Assembly: GCA_977020255.1 (NCBI GenBank)
Contig: CDROCS010000666.1
Coordinates: forward strand, 186,001 to 250,000
Length of the DNA: 64,000 nt
Direction: 5' to 3'
Origin: Obrimoposthia wandeli
Taxonomy: Eukaryota
Part shown: positions 23,045-33,405 of the stretch, in pieces
How positions within the stretch are numbered: the stretch's first letter is position 1
How the letters are laid out: every line of letters starts with the position of its first letter
Translations under genes and position numbers: made by a program
Notes under the pieces: model-generated
The model's input: the letters and a program-made list of their open reading frames with translations, nothing else
What the model was told of the DNA's origin: nothing
Database searches by the model: none

Positions 23045-23350
23045 TCACCACGAATTTTGGCTATCAATCATCACTTCATAATCGTGTTCTTTTTTATGAA
23101 TAAGATACAATTCAATTTCACCTAACTTAGGGTGCTTAAAATGATAGTGTCCATCAGGGAAATGAGTACTACCATCACCTTGAAAGTCGATCGTGAAATG
23201 TTCTATCGAACGCCCTAAATCATCCATGCCATGACGCTCTAATTGCGTAACCGATTTTACGCTAAATGTACCTAACACATCAGATTTATCAAACAAAAAG
23301 ACATGTTCACCAACCAGTTTTTCAATATTTTTCATGGATAATGGATTCAT
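23045..23350 (-). CDS. DUF6916-like hypothetical protein
   Basis: HFTIDFQG..FPDGHYHFKHPKLGEIELYL pattern; family recalled from memory. Confidence 0.55.
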   Translation of the reverse strand: MNPLSMKNIEKLVGEHVFLFDKSDVLGTFSVKSVTQLERHGMDDLGRSIEHFTIDFQGDGSTHFPDGHYHFKHPKLGEIELYLIHKKEHDYEVMIDSQNSW

Positions 23351-23631
23351 AGCTACCCCACTGTATATATCTAATATTCTGATCATCAAGATGCGTTTAA
23401 TTCATCGCATACCAATAATTATAGCTCGACCTACAACTATCAATAATATGCATTGATTGGTTGTTTAATTTCATATTGTGAATAGAAGCAAAGGCGGGTC
23501 TAATCATAACGACTTATCAAATTTAGGTTATTTTAGTTTTTATCGATAATAATAATATCTTTTCAATAGACATCATCTGGCTATCTTCTTAAAATTCTTC
23601 GCAATACAACCATTAATAGATACCTGTCATC

Positions 23632-24780
23632 ATGACTCTCTTTCGTTCTTTATTCTTTATCGCCGTTGCTTTTCTGGTTTCGTCTTGCTCGTTGCTTGAA
23701 ATTAAACTCGACTCACAAACAACCCCGCTCACCGCCCAAGAGCTCAATATTAGACTGTTGTCTCGTGATTACAGCATCACTTTTTTCAAGACTATTGAAG
23801 AAGCCGCTGATGAAATCGCTCAAGCTAACCTCGACGATAACATGCAATATTCGTATACGTTGCTTTGGAAAATTCATAGCGAAGAAGGGCTTCAGCAATC
23901 AGTCTATCAAGCATCTCCGCTGGCGAGCTTAATTGACAGCTGGGTATTTACCCACCAGATGAATGATTATTTCACGACAGGTGCGGGTGAAAAAATATTT
24001 GTAGAACAACAATATATAGCGACAACAGCCAGTAGTAAATTGGTTAAAGACGCAGATGCACTCGCGTTTAACTTATTAAAAAAAGCCGACTACGTAACTG
24101 CTAAACGGTTTGTCGCCCAGTTCAGCCAACAACATCCTTTTGAAAACCTTTCCTTTAAAAGGACACCTGCATTTAAAGATTGGCTAGCCTTCAACGGTTT
24201 TGATGAATCAGAAGCGGTAGCAACACTTGGTACAATGCCTGAAGCGCTAAGCGATCTATCAGATAGACTCAGCTTAATGTCAAATCAGACACCTAAGTTA
24301 TTATCATGGAAGGCAGAGTTAGTTGCGCGTAACAGTCGAGTGAATGGTGAACAGTTAAGCCAAACACTGTCAAATATCAATAATACATCATTAAAATTCC
24401 AAGAGTTTATCGATAACAACCCTGAATATATGCGCCTGTTAGCATCTGAAATGGGGAAAGAGCTACAACCATTACTGAATGATTTCGATAAAAAAGCAGG
24501 TGAAAAGTTAAATGTTATTACGCAAGAACGTATCGCGTTAGAAATAATGGTTGAGCGTGAACGTATTGCTATTGGTCAAATGGTAACGAAAGAGCGTGCA
24601 AATATAACCACAGATTTAGATGGTATCGCACAAAATGTTGTCAAAAAAGCCATCGAACAATTAACAGTAATGCTGTCAGACATTCTGATTTACCTAATAC
24701 TGTTTGTTCTAGTTATTTTCTTTGCACCCTTTGGGTTAGGTTTTCTTGTTGGGCGTAAAACCCATAAAACAAAAGCATAA
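23632..24780 (+). CDS. Conserved hypothetical lipoprotein with coiled-coil and C-terminal TM
   Basis: Lipobox LVSSC, long helical heptad region, C-terminal hydrophobic helix. Confidence 0.75.
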   Translation: MTLFRSLFFIAVAFLVSSCSLLEIKLDSQTTPLTAQELNIRLLSRDYSITFFKTIEEAADEIAQANLDDNMQYSYTLLWKIHSEEGLQQSVYQASPLASLIDSWVFTHQMNDYFTTGAGEKIFVEQQYIATTASSKLVKDADALAFNLLKKADYVTAKRFVAQFSQQHPFENLSFKRTPAFKDWLAFNGFDESEAVATLGTMPEALSDLSDRLSLMSNQTPKLLSWKAELVARNSRVNGEQLSQTLSNINNTSLKFQEFIDNNPEYMRLLASEMGKELQPLLNDFDKKAGEKLNVITQERIALEIMVERERIAIGQMVTKERANITTDLDGIAQNVVKKAIEQLTVMLSDILIYLILFVLVIFFAPFGLGFLVGRKTHKTKA

Positions 24781-24865: not shown

Positions 24866-25027
24866 TCAATAATCGAACTCACTATGTTCAGAGCTGTCGT
24901 AACGTTCCTTAACTATACGACGTTTCTTTTTACGATCATCTTGAATATAATCTTGAGAATCGTCACCAAAATCTAATTTTGATTTATCTTTCGCGCTTTT
25001 ATGAAATTTTTGGTCTAACTTAGCCAT
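24866..25027 (-). CDS. 53-aa highly charged small protein absent from the ORF track
   Basis: Hand translation MAKLDQKFHKSAKDKSKLDFGDDSQDYIQDDRKKKRRIVKERYDSSEHSEFDY*. AGGA RBS six nt upstream of ATG; terminator right after the stop. Confidence 0.75.
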   Translation of the reverse strand: MAKLDQKFHKSAKDKSKLDFGDDSQDYIQDDRKKKRRIVKERYDSSEHSEFDY

Positions 25028-25345
25028 GTTATTTCCTGAAATACATCCAGTGTGAGTGATTAGTAATAGTACAGTGGTAATAATAATGCTTTATTATTAC
25101 AAAATTACGAATATTCTATGTCGAAATCACTACAGATGACGAGACTGTTAAATCCATCATCATGACAATGTAAACATTCGTTCCTTAAGACTAATCGAAT
25201 CACAGAAGCCGTGTACAACAAGATTTTTTCACCGTTACCATTAGTATTTTTTATTCAAAGTAAATAAATCAAAAATACATATACATGCTGTGAACGAGTT
25301 AACAGTTTAGAACGAAATATTTTTAAGTTTAGTTAACTTTTAGTG

Positions 25346-26206
25346 TTAGACCGACTCAATAACATTATTAAAAGGTACAGCTAACATCGCTTCAATCATT
25401 TCTGATTTTTCATTATCTTCACGAGAAATCAAATATAGTGACTGCTCCATCACAGGTGCACCTTTCACTACATGCAATACGCCATCATCAACACTTTGTG
25501 CAACCACTGGTGACGGTAAATACCCCACGCCACCACTACCCAAAATATAATCTAACGCCATACGGCTTGAATGAGTATGTAAAATTGGCGTACGTTGTAG
25601 CTCATGGATCCGGCTATGCTCAACAGAAAAGCGCGTGCCCCAATCAAGATAGACCAATGGGATCTCTCGTACATTTTCCATCGTACAGTTCGGTTTATGT
25701 ACAACCAATTGTAATTGATAGTCACGTACTTTTGTGACTTGTAGATTTTCAATTCTTGGCGCTTCACTGGTAATCGCGACATCAATCGTCTTATCAAGTA
25801 ATCGCTTCGACATACTTTGACGAGGCACCGACTCTAAACGCAATGCTAAGCCGGGTATCGAGCCATATATGCGGTTTGTCCAATCTGAAATACCATCAAA
25901 TTCCCAAAAAAGTGCTGATGCTCCTATCGCTATCTGAGTGTTTAAGGTTTCAGATAATGCGACATCTTGCTTCGCTCGTCCCCACGTTTGCAATATGGCT
26001 TCAGCATACGGCTGTAAACGTTCCCCCGCAGCCGTTAAGTGCACATTGCCACGCTGCCTTGAAAATAATGGGTTACCTAACTGCGACTCTAATTGCCGAA
26101 TTCGAAAACTTACTGCAGATTGCGTAAGAAATAAATTATCTGCCGCACGGCCGAAATGACGTGTTTTAGTCACCTCTAAAAACGTTTTAAGTAATTCTGT
26201 ATCCAC
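25346..26206 (-). CDS. hdfR: LysR-family regulator, HdfR-like
   Basis: GTG start (M)DTELLKTFLEVTKTRHFGRAADNLFLTQSAVSFRIRQLE is nearly identical to the HdfR HTH; divergent from a maoP-like gene. Confidence 0.8.
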   Translation of the reverse strand: MDTELLKTFLEVTKTRHFGRAADNLFLTQSAVSFRIRQLESQLGNPLFSRQRGNVHLTAAGERLQPYAEAILQTWGRAKQDVALSETLNTQIAIGASALFWEFDGISDWTNRIYGSIPGLALRLESVPRQSMSKRLLDKTIDVAITSEAPRIENLQVTKVRDYQLQLVVHKPNCTMENVREIPLVYLDWGTRFSVEHSRIHELQRTPILHTHSSRMALDYILGSGGVGYLPSPVVAQSVDDGVLHVVKGAPVMEQSLYLISREDNEKSEMIEAMLAVPFNNVIESV

Positions 26207-26371
26207 AAGGCTTGCTCTCATAAATAACAACATTCATTAATTTGAATGTTACACCGAAACACTCAAAAAGCATCGATAAATAATTTTAATCGTTATGGTG
26301 AAAATTACTCGTTTTACAAGTTTGACTCTCTGCATGATTATCTGCGAAAACCTCAGCAGGAATATAAATTA

Positions 26372-26722
26372 ATGAGAATTGTAGGCAAATTTTACGACGA
26401 TAAAAATTTCCCTCGAGGCTTTAATCGTTCAGGTGTATTCACCATCAATGAAGCCAGCATGTTAGAAAATTATGGTCGCACTATGCGCGGTTTACAAGAT
26501 GGTTCAGTTGCTCCTATTGATGAATCTGAACGTCAATTTCTAGCTGAGGTTAATGGACAACAAGATGTCATGTCTGAATTTGGAAAATGTTGGATTAAAT
26601 ATTTAAATCGAACAACGACCAAAGAACGCCGTTATACATTGTGTGATTCACCTCGACGAAAGCCTAAAGGTTTATACGACTACGATGATAACGGCTCAGA
26701 TGATAATAACATTGATTATTAA
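26372..26722 (+). CDS. DUF413 / MaoP (YifE)-like protein
   Basis: FYDDKNFPRGFNRSGVFTINEASMLENYG matches the YifE family. Start at ATG26372 after AGGAA. Acidic tail DDNGSDDNNIDY. Confidence 0.85.
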   Translation: MRIVGKFYDDKNFPRGFNRSGVFTINEASMLENYGRTMRGLQDGSVAPIDESERQFLAEVNGQQDVMSEFGKCWIKYLNRTTTKERRYTLCDSPRRKPKGLYDYDDNGSDDNNIDY

Positions 26723-26845
26723 ACAGCTTTAACACCACTCGTCACCCTCTAATTAAATTATAACGACAAGCCATCGTCTAAAGAACGATGGCTTATTTCT
26801 TTTTGCGCTTAGAAAAAAGCTAAGCAATGTAACTTGGTAATATGT

Positions 26846-27874
26846 ATGAAAATTTGTTTTGTTATGTACCCGTGGGAAAGAGTAGAACCAGAATCTGACT
26901 CAACTTTACGAATGATTCACGAAGTCGCTAGTAGAGGGCACACGGTAGCCATTACAACGCCAAATAATTTGACAATGCGTGATAGCATGGCAATCGCATT
27001 CTGTAGCGTTTTAAAACAGTCTGACGTTTCTAACAACATACCAAGCTTTTACCGTAAAGCTGAATTTCGTAAAGCGCAGCTACCCTTAGCGGGTTTTGAC
27101 GCGATCATTATGCGAGCAAACCCACCGCTAGACACAATGGCATTGAATTTCCTTGATTCAGTTCGTGATGACACCTTCATCATGAATGATATTAACGGAC
27201 TGCGCGTTGCAAATAACAAGCTGTATACCGCGTCTTTACCTGATCCAAATAACGAGTTTATTCCTGTTACTCACGTCTCTAAAAATCGTGAATACCTAGA
27301 GCGCGTTCTGGAAGAAAGCCCTAACGATCGCATGATCATGAAACCGTTAGACGGTTACGGTGGTAGCGGCGTTATTTTGGTCGAGAAAAGTGCAAAATCG
27401 AGCGTTAAATCCTTGCTTGATTTCTATATCGGTGCCGACCAAAACTACGTGATCTTACAAGATTATATTGAAGGCGCTGAAAAAGGCGATGTACGTATCA
27501 TGATGCTAAACGGCGAGCCTATTGGGGCTATGCGTCGTGTACCAGCAGATGGCGATGTTCGCTCGAATATTCACGCAGGTGGAAAAGAAGTAAAACACAC
27601 ATTAACCAAGCAAGAGCTGCGTTTATGTAAGCACATTGGCCCTAAATTAGTCCGTGATGGTTTATTCTTTGTCGGGCTTGATGTAATCAGTGGCAAGTTA
27701 GTTGAAGTTAACGTACTCAGCCCTGGCGGCATCACACGAATTAACCGCTTAAATCGCACCAAACTTCAGTCTGAAGTGATTGATTTCGTTGAAACGGTAG
27801 TAAAAGCAAAACACTCTAGCATCGCGCGTAAAAATGCATTCAGCAAAGTAATTGAAGATGCTACAGCTAACTGA
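26846..27874 (+). CDS. GshB/RimK-like ATP-grasp peptide ligase
   Basis: MRANPP, NNKLY, MKPLDGYGGSGV, GDVRIMMLNG, RSNIHAGG, GLDVI..EVNVLSPGG. Confidence 0.85.
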   Translation: MKICFVMYPWERVEPESDSTLRMIHEVASRGHTVAITTPNNLTMRDSMAIAFCSVLKQSDVSNNIPSFYRKAEFRKAQLPLAGFDAIIMRANPPLDTMALNFLDSVRDDTFIMNDINGLRVANNKLYTASLPDPNNEFIPVTHVSKNREYLERVLEESPNDRMIMKPLDGYGGSGVILVEKSAKSSVKSLLDFYIGADQNYVILQDYIEGAEKGDVRIMMLNGEPIGAMRRVPADGDVRSNIHAGGKEVKHTLTKQELRLCKHIGPKLVRDGLFFVGLDVISGKLVEVNVLSPGGITRINRLNRTKLQSEVIDFVETVVKAKHSSIARKNAFSKVIEDATAN

Positions 27875-29840
27875 GCAGGAGGTACTGGATAAGATCCAGC
27901 ACCTTGTCCCATTTGAAGGACAACTAAACGACGGTAGCTTCACTATCCGTATTAGTGAGTATCAACCGTACATTGCAACAGCGATACATAACGGTAGCCG
28001 CCTACGTGGCGAGTTAATGACAAAATGCGAATTAACCGAAGAAGAACGATACTTCGAGGAAGATCCGTTTACTGGTGATTTCATTTCGTCTTTGCCTATC
28101 GTTTTACAAGGTGGTGATTCACGCTACGAATACGACTTAAATCGCGCACCTGAAAACTGTATTTATCAAGATGCGTGGGGAAAAAATGTGTGGTCAACAC
28201 CGTTAACGGATGTTGAAAAGGCAACCTCTTACAACAAGCATGCGTGCTATTACCGCATTCTTAAATGTTTAGTCGCCACGTTAGAAAATAAGTTTGGTTT
28301 GTGCTTATTGTACGATATTCATTCATACAACTATCAGCGCATAGAAACTGAAACACCAACATTCAATATAGGCACTAAACAAGTCAATGCACGCCGTTGG
28401 CGTAAAGAAATTAATGACCTATTAAGTGGTTTAAGCGGCATTGAGCTGCCAAATATTGATGTGACCGTCAAAGAAAATGACATTTTCAAAGGGATGGGAT
28501 ATCAAGCAACGTTCATTAATCAGCACTTCCACAATACATTGATTTTACCGATTGAAATCAAGAAAGTGTACATGAGCGAATTGGGCGGTGAAAGCTTTCC
28601 ACTTGTGATTGAAAAAATGAATGAATCGATGAAAATGGTTATCACGGAGCACGCCGCTTCTACCCTTTTACGTCGAACAAAAATAAAGCGTTTAACAGGC
28701 AGCCATATATTGGCCTCTAAGCTACCACGTGAAGTGATCAAACTTGATCGTCAACTTTATGCGATATCTCGTGGTATCAATACATTAAGCTATATAAACC
28801 CAACGAACTTAAAACAAGAAAAACGTCGCTTCTTGCATAACCCGTATTCATACCAGCCGCAATTTACATACCGCCAGCTGGATTTGGATCCATATAAGTT
28901 TCGTGAACAATTATATCGCTTACCTGTTGAAGATATTCGCGATGCTGATATCCAAAAACTGTATCGCAAAGTGATTGACCAGTTAGCCATTCGTATCGAC
29001 TTGCTAACCAGTATTGGCACTGATGAGTTCTTATATAACTCTTTACGCTACTATGGCCAGCCAGACGAACGAGATATTGCGAATGCAAATTTCATTCTTC
29101 ATGCTTGCGAATACCAAGAGCCACCAGAAGCAACGATTTGCGCAGCGGAAGCTATTCAAGCATTTAAAGATGCGGCAGATGATTACGGTATAACCTGTAA
29201 AGTGGTTGGTTCAAAACAACTGATTGCCAGAGCAATGGTGAGTGGACGCAGTATAAAAGTAAACACGGGGTGTATGTTCTCAACAAGGGACTTAGACGCA
29301 TTAATTCATCACGAATTAGGCGTTCATCTAGTCACTTCAGTAAATGCAGATGCACAACCACTTAACGTGTTGAAGCTGGGTTTGCCGGGCAATACACACA
29401 CACAGGAAGGCTTGGCTATCTTATGTGAGTTTTTATCAGGTAGCTTCCCATTACATCGCCTAAAAACACTCGCATTACGCGTAATTGCTGTTGATATGAT
29501 GGTAAATGGTGAAAGTTTTAGTGCAACATTTAATGCCTTAAAACATGTTCACAAACTATCGGATGATGATGCCTTCACCATTACAACGCGTGCGTATCGT
29601 GGTGGTGGCTTCACTAAAGATTTCTTATATTTACGCGGCTTAAAAGATGCTATTCATGCCTATAAGCAAGGGGATTTAACCTCATTGTTTGTGGGAAAAA
29701 CAGGGTTTGAATCGAAGCCTTTATTGGATGAGTTGATTGCACGAGAAATCTTGAAAAAGCCAGCGTATATACCCAAAGCGCTTTCTATCAAGAAAAAACC
29801 TGATCCTGTAATGGATTTCTTAATAAATTCCATCAAGTAA
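27852..29840 (+). CDS. N-formylglutamate amidohydrolase domain fused to DUF1704 (QEGLA-motif, MATCAP-like) metallo-carboxypeptidase
   Basis: N-terminal AIHNG, EEDPFT, SRYEYDLNR, YDIHSYN. C-terminal HHELGVH (HExxxH), TQEGLA, GGFTKDFLYLRG. Confidence 0.85.
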   Translation: MKMLQLTEQEVLDKIQHLVPFEGQLNDGSFTIRISEYQPYIATAIHNGSRLRGELMTKCELTEEERYFEEDPFTGDFISSLPIVLQGGDSRYEYDLNRAPENCIYQDAWGKNVWSTPLTDVEKATSYNKHACYYRILKCLVATLENKFGLCLLYDIHSYNYQRIETETPTFNIGTKQVNARRWRKEINDLLSGLSGIELPNIDVTVKENDIFKGMGYQATFINQHFHNTLILPIEIKKVYMSELGGESFPLVIEKMNESMKMVITEHAASTLLRRTKIKRLTGSHILASKLPREVIKLDRQLYAISRGINTLSYINPTNLKQEKRRFLHNPYSYQPQFTYRQLDLDPYKFREQLYRLPVEDIRDADIQKLYRKVIDQLAIRIDLLTSIGTDEFLYNSLRYYGQPDERDIANANFILHACEYQEPPEATICAAEAIQAFKDAADDYGITCKVVGSKQLIARAMVSGRSIKVNTGCMFSTRDLDALIHHELGVHLVTSVNADAQPLNVLKLGLPGNTHTQEGLAILCEFLSGSFPLHRLKTLALRVIAVDMMVNGESFSATFNALKHVHKLSDDDAFTITTRAYRGGGFTKDFLYLRGLKDAIHAYKQGDLTSLFVGKTGFESKPLLDELIAREILKKPAYIPKALSIKKKPDPVMDFLINSIK

Positions 29841-29987
29841 TGCCAGTTAAAGCGACTTCGGTCGCTTTTGTTTCATCTGTCATAAAAAATAAAACAATTA
29901 CCCCAGCAGTAATACGTGAAAATAAATCCTTACAAAAAGAACTTGAGATTGACGCATAAAATACTGACAATGCGCAGCGCATAAAAT

Positions 29988-30182: not shown

Positions 30183-30599
30183 ATGTCTTTTGGGGTGAGA
30201 AATCACCACATTGCAAAATGGTCACTGGTTATGGTTTGGCTAGTTATCGTTGTCTGTTTAGGACAACGGGCTGGTTTTATATCGTCGTGCCCAATGAGTG
30301 CTGACAACCGTTCATCTGAAGCATCGCTTTTCAATGACCAACATGCCAACGCAGAACTTGCATCAACAGCGAATACAAGTGATCGCAGCATTAATAGCGC
30401 AACTGACAAGCAATGTGACATGACAGATCACCTGCTTCAAGTTCATCAACACTCTTTTGAACATGCCCTCATCTTTATATCACTATTGATCGTTGTGCTC
30501 GCTTGGCTGAGTACGATGCAATACCGCATTCCCGTTTTAACTGAACCGATCCCCCCTACCCGACGGCTTCATTTAACCTTGTGTGTTTTTCGAGAATAA
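30183..30599 (+). CDS. Hypothetical membrane protein upstream of the DsbD-family gene
   Basis: Two hydrophobic segments, Cys/His motifs (CDMTDHLL), C-terminal RRLHLTLCVFRE, a pattern seen in small metal/redox-locus leader genes. Confidence 0.7.
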   Translation: MSFGVRNHHIAKWSLVMVWLVIVVCLGQRAGFISSCPMSADNRSSEASLFNDQHANAELASTANTSDRSINSATDKQCDMTDHLLQVHQHSFEHALIFISLLIVVLAWLSTMQYRIPVLTEPIPPTRRLHLTLCVFRE

Positions 30600-30667
30600 A
30601 CCCTCCGGCATTTCTACATCTGGCAAAAGCCAACATGATTTGTTTTAGCGTTTATTGGAGATCCACC

Positions 30668-32803
30668 TTGAAAAAAATATTCAACTCTTACGTTTCACTG
30701 TTCATATTGCTCAGTGCGTCGTTTCTCGCACTTTTCTCACTTACAGCCAATGCATCTGATGAAAGCACTGGTTGGTTAGTGAACCCGATGCATCCCCCGC
30801 TTGAAGTTCGCTTAATGCTTACAGGGCAAAAAGATCTTGAAGCAAAAACAGTGGAAGGCTTTTTAGAAGTCAAACTTGCTAACGATTGGAAAACCTATTG
30901 GCGTTCTCCTGGTGAAGGAGGCATAGCGCCAAAGGTTGATTGGGAACTATCCAATAACCTCGATACTGTAGATTGGCAATGGCCAATGCCAAAACGCTAT
31001 GAATTTTTGGGCGTTGAAACGCTTGGTTATAAAGAACACGTTATCTTTCCGATGACTTTCCATATTGATGATATGAACAAGCCTGTTTTCCTCTCGGGAA
31101 AATTGACGATGTCATCGTGTACCAGCATTTGTGTTCTGACAGATTACGAGTTGATATTGGATTTCACACCAGCTAATTTACCGTTATCAACCAACGCAAT
31201 GCATGTCTTTAATCAAGGTATGAGCCAAGTTCCAAAGACATCACAAGCCGTGTCTCTAGACATGATTTCATGGAACCAAGCAAAGAAAGAGCTCACTGTT
31301 GTAGCAACGAATACTGCAGGCTGGAATAAACCAGATGTATTCATTGATGGTCAATCTCAGAATGTAAAAGACACATCATTTTTAGCCCCAAAGATCGCCA
31401 TTAACGATAAGCAGATGATCGCAACAATACCCGCATCAAGCTGGTTTGGTGATCCGGAATTACTCAATGAAGAAATGGCTGTCACAATCAGTGATGAGAA
31501 CATGGCCGTTGAACTGTCAGCAACGGCAACCAATCAAATTGTGCCGATGGCTGCCAATACCAGCCTACTCAAAATTATTGGTCTCGCCTTATTAGGTGGA
31601 TTGATTCTTAACATCATGCCATGCGTACTGCCCGTTTTAGGCATGAAGCTGAGCAGTGTAATATCAGCTGAAGGGCTAGAAAAACGCCAAATTCGTACCC
31701 AGTTTTTAGCATCTGCAGCAGGTATTTTAACGTCTTTCTGGTTAATTGCAGGCTTTCTCGTAATACTAAAAATTTCAGGTCAAGCTTTAGGCTGGGGCAT
31801 CCAGTTCCAAAACCCGTACTTCATTGGTGCCATGATTATCATCACGGGTTTGTTTGCTGCAAACATGTTAGGGCTATTTGAAATTCGCTTATCAAGTAAT
31901 ACAAATACATGGTTAGCAACCCGTGGTGATAACTCACATACCGGACATTTCGTTCAAGGTATGTTTGCAACCTTACTCGCCACCCCATGTAGTGCACCTT
32001 TCTTAGGCACTGCCGTTGCGTTTGCACTAGGGGCTAATTACTTCACCCTCTTTGCTATCTTTACAGCTTTAGCAATTGGTATGGCAGCCCCTTGGTTGCT
32101 GATTGCCTTGTTCCCACGGTTGGCTCAAATGATGCCAAAACCTGGCAAGTGGATGGACAAAGTAAAAACCATGTTTGGTTTAATGATGCTAGCCACCAGC
32201 ATTTGGTTACTCACGTTAATGACCAGTTTCTTAAGTACAGGTTTAGTTTGGTTAATCGGTCTTAGTTTAATAGCACTGTTGTTATGGCGCTTAGGTAACG
32301 TAAAAGGACGCAAGCCTGTTATCCTCACGCTCGCCTTCTTAATCTTTGGTTCTGCTGGCGGTATGCTTCTAGGCAGCGTAACTGCAGATCATTGGGCGAC
32401 GCCACTGCCTGCAGATCATGCATGGGTGCCGTTGCAAACAGATGAAATAGCACATGCTGTTAGCCAAGGTAAAACCGTTTTTGTCGATGTAACTGCCGAC
32501 TGGTGTATTACCTGTAAAGCCAACAAGATTGGTGTATTGCTTCAAGAGCCCGTTTATTCAGCGCTTGGCGAAGATAACATGCTGTTAATGCGTGGTGACT
32601 GGACGAAACCGTCAGATTACGTGACAGGCTTCTTGCAGTCTTACGGTCGCTTTGGTGTGCCATTTAATATTATTTATGGCCCGGGTGCGCCACAGGGCAT
32701 CTCATTACCTGTGATTTTAAGTACTAATGATGTATTAAATGCCCTTCGTGTTGCGAGTGATTCATCTAATGCCGTGGTTTCAGCTCAGGCGAATAAGGGT
32801 TAA
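30668..32803 (+). CDS. ScsB-type DsbD-family thiol:disulfide interchange protein
   Basis: WKTYWRSPGEGG, CTSIC, NIMPCVLP, TPCSAPFLG, WCITCK thioredoxin domain. TTG start after GGAG. Confidence 0.9.
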   Translation: MKKIFNSYVSLFILLSASFLALFSLTANASDESTGWLVNPMHPPLEVRLMLTGQKDLEAKTVEGFLEVKLANDWKTYWRSPGEGGIAPKVDWELSNNLDTVDWQWPMPKRYEFLGVETLGYKEHVIFPMTFHIDDMNKPVFLSGKLTMSSCTSICVLTDYELILDFTPANLPLSTNAMHVFNQGMSQVPKTSQAVSLDMISWNQAKKELTVVATNTAGWNKPDVFIDGQSQNVKDTSFLAPKIAINDKQMIATIPASSWFGDPELLNEEMAVTISDENMAVELSATATNQIVPMAANTSLLKIIGLALLGGLILNIMPCVLPVLGMKLSSVISAEGLEKRQIRTQFLASAAGILTSFWLIAGFLVILKISGQALGWGIQFQNPYFIGAMIIITGLFAANMLGLFEIRLSSNTNTWLATRGDNSHTGHFVQGMFATLLATPCSAPFLGTAVAFALGANYFTLFAIFTALAIGMAAPWLLIALFPRLAQMMPKPGKWMDKVKTMFGLMMLATSIWLLTLMTSFLSTGLVWLIGLSLIALLLWRLGNVKGRKPVILTLAFLIFGSAGGMLLGSVTADHWATPLPADHAWVPLQTDEIAHAVSQGKTVFVDVTADWCITCKANKIGVLLQEPVYSALGEDNMLLMRGDWTKPSDYVTGFLQSYGRFGVPFNIIYGPGAPQGISLPVILSTNDVLNALRVASDSSNAVVSAQANKG

Positions 32804-32828
32804 GGGTTAAGGGTTAAGGGTTAAGGGT
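32794..32828 (+). repeat. Perfect heptamer tandem repeat (TAAGGGT)x5
   Basis: Read directly; includes the dsbD stop codon and overlaps the next GTG start. Confidence 0.97.
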
Positions 32829-33405
32829 GAATAGAATGTCTGAATCAAATGAAAATGCATCACCTAAAACACCAAAGAAAAAAACGGACAATAAGCGAAA
32901 GACAAAGAAAGCAAAAGGGCTACGTCACTGGCTAAAAGAAGCCGTCATGTTTCTTGTTATATTGACTATTTTCAGTACAGGGCTAGACATTTGGCGCAGT
33001 GGAGATATGCCATCAAATGAAGTGCCTGAACTGATTGCTCAAACCATTAACGATGAAACTATCGATTTAAAAGCGATGAGTTACGAGAAACCAGTATTGC
33101 TGTATTTTTGGGCGACATGGTGCCCAGCATGTAAATTTGTATCCCCCACCGTGAACTGGATGAGTGATCACTTTACTGTGGTATCTGTTGCCATAACATC
33201 GGGTGAGAATCGCCGGATAAATGCATTTATGGATAACAGCGGCTATACCTTCCCCGTTATCAATGATGATAAAGGGAACATAAGCCGATCTTGGGGAGTA
33301 TCAGCTACGCCAAGTATCGTTATCATCAAAGATGGTGAAATATCATTCATCACAACAGGAGTGTCAACACCTCCCGGTTTATGGTTACGAATGCTATTTG
33401 CTTAG
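32827..33405 (+). CDS. ScsD-like membrane-anchored thioredoxin (TlpA family)
   Basis: LLYFWATWCPACK, WGVSATP; N-terminal TM. The start may be ATG32836. Confidence 0.88.
   Translation: MNRMSESNENASPKTPKKKTDNKRKTKKAKGLRHWLKEAVMFLVILTIFSTGLDIWRSGDMPSNEVPELIAQTINDETIDLKAMSYEKPVLLYFWATWCPACKFVSPTVNWMSDHFTVVSVAITSGENRRINAFMDNSGYTFPVINDDKGNISRSWGVSATPSIVIIKDGEISFITTGVSTPPGLWLRMLFA

Follow-up and report, generated by a model that had tools for sequence, protein, structure and literature searches.

Which acceptor could be shared by an ATP-grasp ligase and a MATCAP-type carboxypeptidase that are encoded by two overlapping bacterial genes? The question is raised by a stretch of 64,000 nucleotides (nt), referred to as the window in the following (contig CDROCS010000666.1, positions 186,001 to 250,000; assembly GCA_977020255.1, Obrimoposthia wandeli). 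The window is Photobacterium DNA, and the peptidase that it encodes, a fusion of an N-formylglutamate amidohydrolase (FGase) domain with a MATCAP domain, is 96% identical to its P. frigidiphilum homolog. Five genes are found within 24866-29840, all at the coordinates given in an original prediction that was made from the DNA letters alone. They encode, in this order, a protein of 53 amino acids (aa), a LysR-family regulator similar to HdfR, a DUF413/MaoP-like protein, the ligase, which belongs to the GshB/RimK clade, and the FGase-MATCAP fusion (Table 1). The prediction had described ligase and fusion as a writer/eraser cycle acting on protein C-termini, with the two acidic-tailed neighbours as candidate substrates. 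The analysis presented here shows that the pair is a real and conserved module, which is experimentally uncharacterised. Its most likely activity is an add/trim cycle on the acidic carboxyl terminus of a candidate acceptor. As acceptor, a small peptide of the glutamyl type or another substrate that all host bacteria have in common is our tentative first choice, held with somewhat less than even confidence. Tubulin-like editing of protein tails is attractive for Photobacterium but unproven.

Conservation of the ligase-peptidase pair

To characterize the pair across bacteria, a scan with one genome per species was performed, which gave 80 loci and, together with the window, a set of 81. The ligase gene is located directly 5' of the fusion gene and overlaps it in 74 of the 81 loci; of the other seven, a contig end truncates one and the ligase is missing from six. 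Ligase and peptidase are a conserved, translationally coupled unit. The overlapping pair that had been described for the window is present with all of its motifs (HHELGVH and QEGLA in the fusion, EVNVLSPGG in the ligase). The pair is found in Pseudomonadota (Gammaproteobacteria), Bacteroidota, Planctomycetota, Chlamydiota, Deinococcota, Verrucomicrobiota, Bdellovibrionota, Bacillota and others. In the peptidase tree, branches of these phyla are intermixed, as would fit a horizontal transfer of the module. Across several phyla, the module is common in bacteria that live in the sea or with hosts, and its current annotations are misleading: in databases, the genes are called 'glutathione synthase' and 'flavohemoglobin expression-modulating protein'. 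The latter name presumably goes back to PA3697 of P. aeruginosa and the fhp promoter, a link for which a citation exists.

An all-against-all clustering of the flanking open reading frames (ORFs) of the 81 loci revealed no further gene family common to the loci. Neither a DUF413 protein nor a relative of the 53-aa protein is found beside the pair in 57 of the 81 loci, and the flanking genes of these 57 are mutually unrelated. The gene context of HutG-type enzymes is not seen: hut genes occur neither in this part of the window nor as conserved neighbours in the set of 81 loci. No paper linking bacterial DUF1704/MATCAP homologs to an ATP-grasp partner was found in the literature searched; the gene pairing may nevertheless have been described before.

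Two kinds of genes recur beside the pair in a minority of loci. Genes of MscS-like channels flank it in eight (L021, L033, L034, L039, L041, L055, L056 and L079), in several cases directly 3', and aminotransferase genes flank it in seven others (L035, L038, L040, L042, L060, L065 and L074). These flanks hint at amino-acid or osmolyte metabolism.

The ATP-grasp ligase

The ligase matches GSH-S_N, GSH-S_ATP and RimK in Pfam (RimK domain, 73 bits). Its best NCBIfam model is NF009110, a 'glutathione synthetase' subfamily (485.6 bits, cut-off 408). Of the GshB equivalog models, NF003573 is passed (287.6 bits, cut-off 272) and TIGR01380 is not (243.2 bits, cut-off 299.05), and the scores lie below both RimK cut-offs (TIGR00768, 79.9 vs. 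143.4; NF007764, 56.3 vs. 331). Sequence comparison gives E. coli GshB (1GSA) with an E-value of 3.7e-38 and RimK with about 1e-15. The same order is obtained for the fold: the AlphaFold2 (AF2) model (pLDDT 89) is best matched by 1GSA, which is GshB with ADP and glutathione (TM 0.82/0.89), followed by RimK (0.70/0.82) and then ArgX/LysX.

The active site was compared in an alignment of 52 orthologs with E. coli GshB and RimK, both taken from the MG1655 record. The family retains the GshB N-terminal domain, the R-x-[ND]-P-P-x-D motif, the lid loop, the metal-binding E-x-N and the Mg/ATP motifs, and equivalents of GshB Arg210, Arg225 and Arg233 are kept. Two active-site motifs, RSNIHAGG and EVNVLSPGG, are nearer to those of RimK (RSNLHRGG, EVNASPG) than to those of GshB (RGNLAAGG, EINVTSPTC); for the second motif, this had already been proposed in the original prediction and is borne out by the alignment. 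In the AF2 model, residues 307-341 form an extra C-terminal helix that is absent from GshB. Ligases of other phyla are 48-73% identical to that of the window (Bacteroidota about 60%). By these sequence features, the family appears to be intermediate between GshB and RimK, and the ligase looks catalytically competent because the catalytic residues are conserved.

Expression data are available for P. damselae, a relative in which the ortholog of the window ligase (RS17020) is encoded on chromosome II. A canonical glutathione synthase gene of 948 nt (RS03915) is located on chromosome I. At 1% compared to 3% NaCl, the canonical gene falls 1.6-fold, whereas RS17020 rises 38.4-fold. In this relative, canonical gshB thus exists as a gene of its own, which makes the ligase its paralog and not the housekeeping glutathione synthetase. 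The gene content of P. damselae argues against the possibility that the ligase simply makes glutathione, which the original prediction had named among the findings that would speak against tail editing. The authors of the P. damselae transcriptome study discussed the ortholog as 'GshB', a reading that we consider doubtful. Whether the substrate is a protein tail or a small peptide, the 38-fold induction of this 'gshB' should not be taken at face value as glutathione synthesis.

The FGase-MATCAP fusion hydrolase

The second gene of the pair encodes a fusion of two hydrolase domains. The N-terminal part matches FGase (PF05013; 55.4 bits, cut-off 28.9), and the C-terminal part matches MATCAP (PF08014; 372.1 bits, cut-off 27) as well as TIGR02421 'QEGLA' (491.7 bits, cut-off 338.65). 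HELGVH and TQEGLA of the fusion motifs align with HEIGTH and TEEGLA of human KIAA0895L. For the N-terminal domain, a sequence search of solved structures returned only noise, and the domain was identified by the fold search. In the AF2 model (pLDDT 93), the N-terminal half matches the N-formylglutamate amidohydrolases 2Q7S and 2ODF (TMt 0.67-0.70) and, more remotely, carboxypeptidases of the M14/CCP type and poly-gamma-glutamate hydrolases. The C-terminal half matches human MATCAP (7Z5G, 7Z6S) with TMt 0.62-0.67 and a probability of 1.00.

The peptidase alignment has a mean column identity of 55%. Among 61 sequences, H487, E488, H492 and E519 of the MATCAP domain are invariant, as are the basic residues R536, R543, R580, R583, K589 and K616; the latter would fit an acidic substrate. 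In the FGase domain of the same sequences, the invariant positions are H46, R66, E70, S90, R91, D95 and D155; D89, E93, H130 and H157 are almost invariant. As for the ligase, conservation, here of the zinc-site residues, makes the fusion look catalytically competent. The characterised enzymes of the FGase family act on small N-acyl-glutamates. The only characterised enzymes of the MATCAP family act on protein tails.

The LysR regulator and the acidic-tailed neighbours

The LysR protein scores 237.8 bits against the HdfR model NF002946 (cut-off 240), and its P. damselae ortholog is annotated as HdfR. The DUF413 protein is encoded divergently, as in the hdfR-maoP arrangement of E. coli, and stays below the cut-off of every NCBIfam equivalog model of the MaoP type. 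DUF413 accompanies the pair in 24 of the 81 loci and LysR in 23. DUF413-linked loci are confined to two gammaproteobacterial clades of the peptidase tree, one consisting of Vibrionaceae, the other of Alteromonadaceae, Pseudoalteromonadaceae, Colwelliaceae, Cellvibrionaceae, Endozoicomonadaceae and one Vibrio, a distribution compatible with few origins of the association and subsequent losses. DUF413 contexts beyond the 81 loci were sampled by contig look-ups and in a plasmid collection.

In the window, the DUF413 tail reads ...DDNNIDY. Of 36 Photobacterium orthologs, 34 end in an acidic residue (asparagine in one) followed by Y, I or F (DY 19, DI 9, EY 3, DF 2, NY 1). The tail motif in this genus consists of an acidic residue, then I/L/M/F, then D/E/N, then Y/I/F, and is preceded by a variable acidic linker. 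The DUF413 family as a whole is a small one: clustering at 50% identity leaves 292 representatives. Of 150 representatives, 103 have 15 C-terminal residues with a net charge of -3 or lower, and E. coli MaoP ends in ...EDYTDSDD. Six of the 150 end in Y and 48 in a hydrophobic residue.

The 53-aa protein starts with MAKLDQKF and has an acidic middle, a KKKRR block and an acidic/aromatic tail (...SEHSEFDY). It has no match in Pfam or NCBIfam, and a homolog search with its sequence returned near-identical copies only. Relatives were found in 13 of the 81 loci and additionally at L085, L094 and L090, the last from P. damselae. Of these 16 relatives, 11 end in Y and the others in Q, M or F. The observation that two neighbours of the pair have acidic DY ends holds: across the entire window, 253 ORFs have a length of 45 aa or more, and of these only the two neighbours end in DY. 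Both ends are also conserved in orthologs, and the two DY ends are therefore beyond chance, which the original prediction had left open.

A link between the tails and the enzymes was also proposed, with a terminal aromatic residue conserved only where the enzymes are present. This is not found. Outside Photobacterium, 3 of 11 lineages with a module-linked DUF413 protein have a hydrophobic end, which is not above the family value of 48/150. Moreover, such ends occur at loci that lack the module: the DUF413 tail of a V. campbellii LysR-DUF413 locus ends in EDY, and the relative of the 53-aa protein at a Vibrio-like locus ends in ...DRLY; the module may lie elsewhere in either of these genomes.

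Outside the gammaproteobacteria, no acidic-tailed protein is a conserved neighbour of the module, and one isolated case was seen. In a metagenome-assembled genome of Cytophagales (L069, 6613-6903), an unrelated protein of 96 aa is encoded 77 bp 5' of the ligase gene and has a long acidic tail that ends in EEDLDY. Many Photobacterium DUF413 proteins have the same end; as a single case, it could be due to chance.

Induction at low salt and regulatory elements

In the published P. damselae RNA-seq comparison of 1% with 3% NaCl, the gene of the small protein (RS17005) is induced 18.6-fold, DUF413 9.1-fold, the ligase 38.4-fold and the peptidase 27.5-fold; the LysR ortholog falls 2.3-fold. The rimK gene of P. 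damselae is also strongly induced at low salt, and its neighbours are absent from the list of differentially expressed genes.

The promoter regions of the 53-aa gene and the DUF413 gene have a common element, an A-tract followed by TYGWTKTACA, that is kept in 10 Photobacterium loci. The derived pattern occurs in the 64-kb window only at these two sites, compared to 0.35 expected occurrences, a comparison that is circular in that the pattern was built from these very sequences. The element may be a joint operator or promoter for the low-salt induction, and its sharing by the two genes is suggestive only. A sigma-70-like hexamer pair is located at 26313-26341.

Photobacterium loci share the hairpin between the DUF413 and ligase genes, and where its inner stem differs between them, base pairing is preserved. 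By sequence, it looks like a terminator or attenuator; 3' of it lies a second, small hairpin. An Rfam search of the locus returned nothing credible and no family for this hairpin. Read-through at this site may be regulated, as suggested by the P. damselae data, where the downstream genes rise 38-fold compared to 9-fold for DUF413.

Proposed function and alternative explanations

The core of the proposed mechanism is a self-contained two-gene enzyme module that would have spread between phyla. By the chemistry of its family, the ligase would convert a terminal carboxylate into an acyl-phosphate and couple an amino acid to this activated end. The MATCAP-type domain would remove C-terminal residues from an acidic chain, and the FGase/M14-like domain would cleave a bond of the N-acyl-glutamate type, such that an acidic peptide could be extended and shortened at its carboxyl end by the two enzymes together. 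A small glutamyl-type or universal acceptor is suggested because the enzymes are highly conserved across phyla and no protein neighbour is conserved with them. By analogy, the GshB-like architecture of the ligase and the small-molecule precedent of the FGase family point the same way, and we regard such a substrate as plausible, if short of probable. If a small glutamyl peptide is indeed made and degraded by the pair, it would be a new low-salinity metabolite. The module follows the hdfR-maoP-like pair in Photobacterium as well as in certain other gammaproteobacteria of marine origin. This adjacency would reflect common regulation and, possibly, a use of the enzymes on the acidic MaoP-like and 53-aa tails that is particular to these lineages.

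Several observations weigh against a small acceptor and fit a protein substrate at least as well. The precedent for MATCAP-type enzymes is a protein tail, and the ligase motifs RSNIHAGG and EVNVLSPGG resemble those of RimK, which modifies a protein tail. Low salt induces both acidic-tailed neighbours along with the enzymes in P. damselae. The DUF413 and ligase genes overlap or almost touch in five loci (gaps of -4, -1, 8, 21 and 29 nt), and in two Vibrio-like loci (L083:5968-8394 and L093:6001-8565) LysR, DUF413 and the peptidase occur without the ligase, with DUF413 tails that end in acidic residues (EED, EDD). According to the corresponding explanation, the pair edits protein C-termini: the MATCAP domain would strip the MaoP-like and 53-aa proteins of a terminal Tyr/Ile/Phe, or of acidic residues, and the ligase would put a residue back, which would tune a nucleoid-associated protein at low salinity. 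The end motif of the Photobacterium DUF413 orthologs, kept in 34 of 36 while the linker varies, argues for this, as do the Y ends of 11 of the 16 small-protein relatives, the position of DUF413 beside the pair in 24 of the 81 loci, partly in tight three-gene operons, the loci with LysR, DUF413 and peptidase but without ligase, the 9-38-fold induction of all four genes at 1% NaCl and the conserved element common to both promoters. Precedents are available in MATCAP/TTL on tubulin, in RimK and RimB on S6 and in LysX/LysW among the structural neighbours, and MaoP of Y. pestis is a nucleoid-associated DNA-binding protein whose gene is activated by HdfR. Against it stand the 57 loci without either neighbour, the small size of the DUF413 family and the occurrence of acidic tails throughout that family, E. 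coli MaoP included. Likewise, the hydrophobic end is not enriched in module-linked DUF413 proteins outside Photobacterium, EDY and LY ends are found at loci without the module, enzymes that are nearly invariant across phyla argue for a universal substrate, and MaoP with a C-terminal FLAG tag is functional in Y. pestis. The writer/eraser cycle of the original prediction is thus retained in part. The coupled pair, its catalytic residues, the conserved Photobacterium tails and the co-expression with the candidate substrates in P. damselae agree with a cycle of the TTL/MATCAP type; a candidate tail does not accompany the enzymes across their whole range (DUF413 in 24/81 and the small protein in 13/81 loci), and outside Photobacterium the tails are not tied to the enzymes. 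On balance, we consider editing of protein C-termini possible but rather unlikely; with it, bacteria would have a second writer/eraser system besides RimK/RimB, and tubulin detyrosination would have a relative in prokaryotes. A more specific form, unlikely and a little more so than tail editing in general, is a bacterial counterpart of the tubulin tail code, in which editing of the MaoP-like and 53-aa tails by ligase and MATCAP domain at low salinity would switch their binding to DNA or partners. The MATCAP eraser would then be of bacterial origin and would already have been accompanied by an ATP-grasp writer.

The tails could also serve binding instead of editing. The MaoP-like and 53-aa proteins would then act as regulators or adaptors, with an acidic-hydrophobic motif at the C-terminus for contact with the enzymes or with a common partner, comparable to the tail of SSB, which is such a binding motif. 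An aromatic or hydrophobic residue within the acidic tail is common across the DUF413 family, the tail motifs of both proteins are alike, and the genes are co-expressed and in part joined in operons; the enzymes, however, mostly occur without these proteins, and this explanation appears improbable. Similarly improbable is a second, stress-induced glutathione synthetase with the QEGLA protein as an unrelated co-transcribed peptidase or regulator. This is the reading of the P. damselae authors for the ligase, and it agrees with the passed NF003573 cut-off (287.6 vs. 272), the glutathione-bound 1GSA as best structural match and the retained equivalents of Arg210, Arg225 and Arg233. However, TIGR01380 is failed (243 vs. 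299) and NF009110 fits far better, the canonical P. damselae gshB is located elsewhere and regulated in the opposite direction, two active-site motifs are RimK-like and not those of GshB, and an overlap with a peptidase gene in 74 of the 81 loci across phyla is unexpected for an isozyme.

Comparison with known systems

The eukaryotic pair of MATCAP/TMCP1 (KIAA0895L) and TTL is similar to the module in that the fusion is a PF08014 member with the same HExxH...E zinc site and fold, has an ATP-grasp partner and, in Photobacterium, is found beside proteins with encoded acidic tails that end in Tyr, as alpha-tubulin does. In contrast, the ligase belongs to the GshB/RimK clade and is not matched to TTL, the peptidase is fused to a domain of the FGase fold, tubulin is absent, and the terminal Tyr is conserved in one genus only.

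In the RimK system, the ATP-grasp enzyme extends the acidic C-terminus of ribosomal protein S6 by polyglutamylation and a protease (RimB/RimA) removes the additions. The motifs RSNxHxGG and EVNxSPG are common to RimK and the ligase, and in both systems a bacterial ATP-grasp enzyme is paired with a protease. The ligase differs by scores under the RimK cut-offs and by its GshB N-terminal domain, and the candidate eraser is a metallocarboxypeptidase fusion instead of a retropepsin-like protease. GshB is the best match of the ligase in sequence and fold and has the same domain set (GSH-S_N and GSH-S_ATP), lid loop and catalytic residues. Unlike GshB, the ligase falls into a separate NCBIfam subfamily, is a paralog of canonical gshB, is obligately paired with a peptidase and has RimK-like motifs as well as the extra helix.

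In the LysW/LysX/LysK system, a RimK-clade ATP-grasp enzyme ligates onto the acidic C-terminal tail of a small protein, and the product is set free by a metallohydrolase; structural neighbours of the module's ligase include ArgX and LysX. The tail of LysW ends in Glu. The kinase, reductase and aminotransferase genes of the carrier pathway, in contrast, are found outside the conserved module. The HdfR-MaoP locus of Enterobacterales shares the divergent LysR-DUF413 arrangement. It differs in that the Photobacterium locus has the enzyme module 3' and the 53-aa gene 5', that the DUF413 protein is below the equivalog cut-offs, and that in P. damselae the LysR transcript falls at low salt while DUF413 rises.

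Gene starts and genomic context

The coordinates of all features are given in Table 1. The ORF of the DUF413 protein opens at 26246 (26246-26722), and orthologs begin at an internal Met. As orthologs have 109-137 aa, mostly 113-118, the start listed is the most likely one. For the fusion, the ATG listed is the most likely start by sequence and gives an overlap of 17 nt with the ligase gene; the identical 17-nt overlap is annotated in P. damselae.

Table 1 Features of the module locus and its surroundings in the window
Feature	Position	Strand	Basis
53-aa highly charged protein	24866..25027	-	ORF; relatives found at other loci
Conserved promoter-region element 5' of the 53-aa gene, A-tract then TTGTTGTACA	25212..25230	-	Kept in 10 Photobacterium loci
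HdfR-like LysR-family regulator, divergent from the DUF413 gene	25346..26233	-	HTH_1 and LysR_substrate domains
Matching promoter-region element 5' of the DUF413 gene, A-tract then TCGTTTTACA	26300..26318	+	Same pattern search
DUF413/MaoP-like protein, ~116 aa, acidic tail with NIDY end	26372..26722	+	PF04219, 121 bits
GC-rich hairpin then T-run, between the DUF413 and ligase genes (putative terminator or attenuator)	26768..26794	+	Terminator scan and conservation
ATP-grasp amino-acid ligase (predicted), GshB/RimK clade, NF009110 subfamily	26846..27874	+	Pfam, NCBIfam, fold
Two-domain hydrolase fusion gene, 662-aa ORF from 27852	27858..29840	+	Pfam, NCBIfam, fold
FGase-fold domain of the fusion	~27966-28565	+	PF05013 and fold
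MATCAP-type gluzincin carboxypeptidase domain of the fusion	~28827-29831	+	PF08014 and fold
Terminator-like hairpin 3' of the fusion gene	29849..29868	+	Terminator scan

On the 5' side, a DUF6916 protein is encoded at 23045-23389 and a protein of 382 aa at 23632-24780, the latter matches no family and has a start resembling a signal peptide and a membrane helix at its C-terminus. Both are not conserved beside the module. The genes 3' of the module (30183-33405) encode a membrane-like ORF of 138 aa, a DsbD homolog and a thioredoxin-like protein. In P. damselae, these three are not among the strongly induced genes listed beside the locus, and they are found there (L090) in the same order as in the window.

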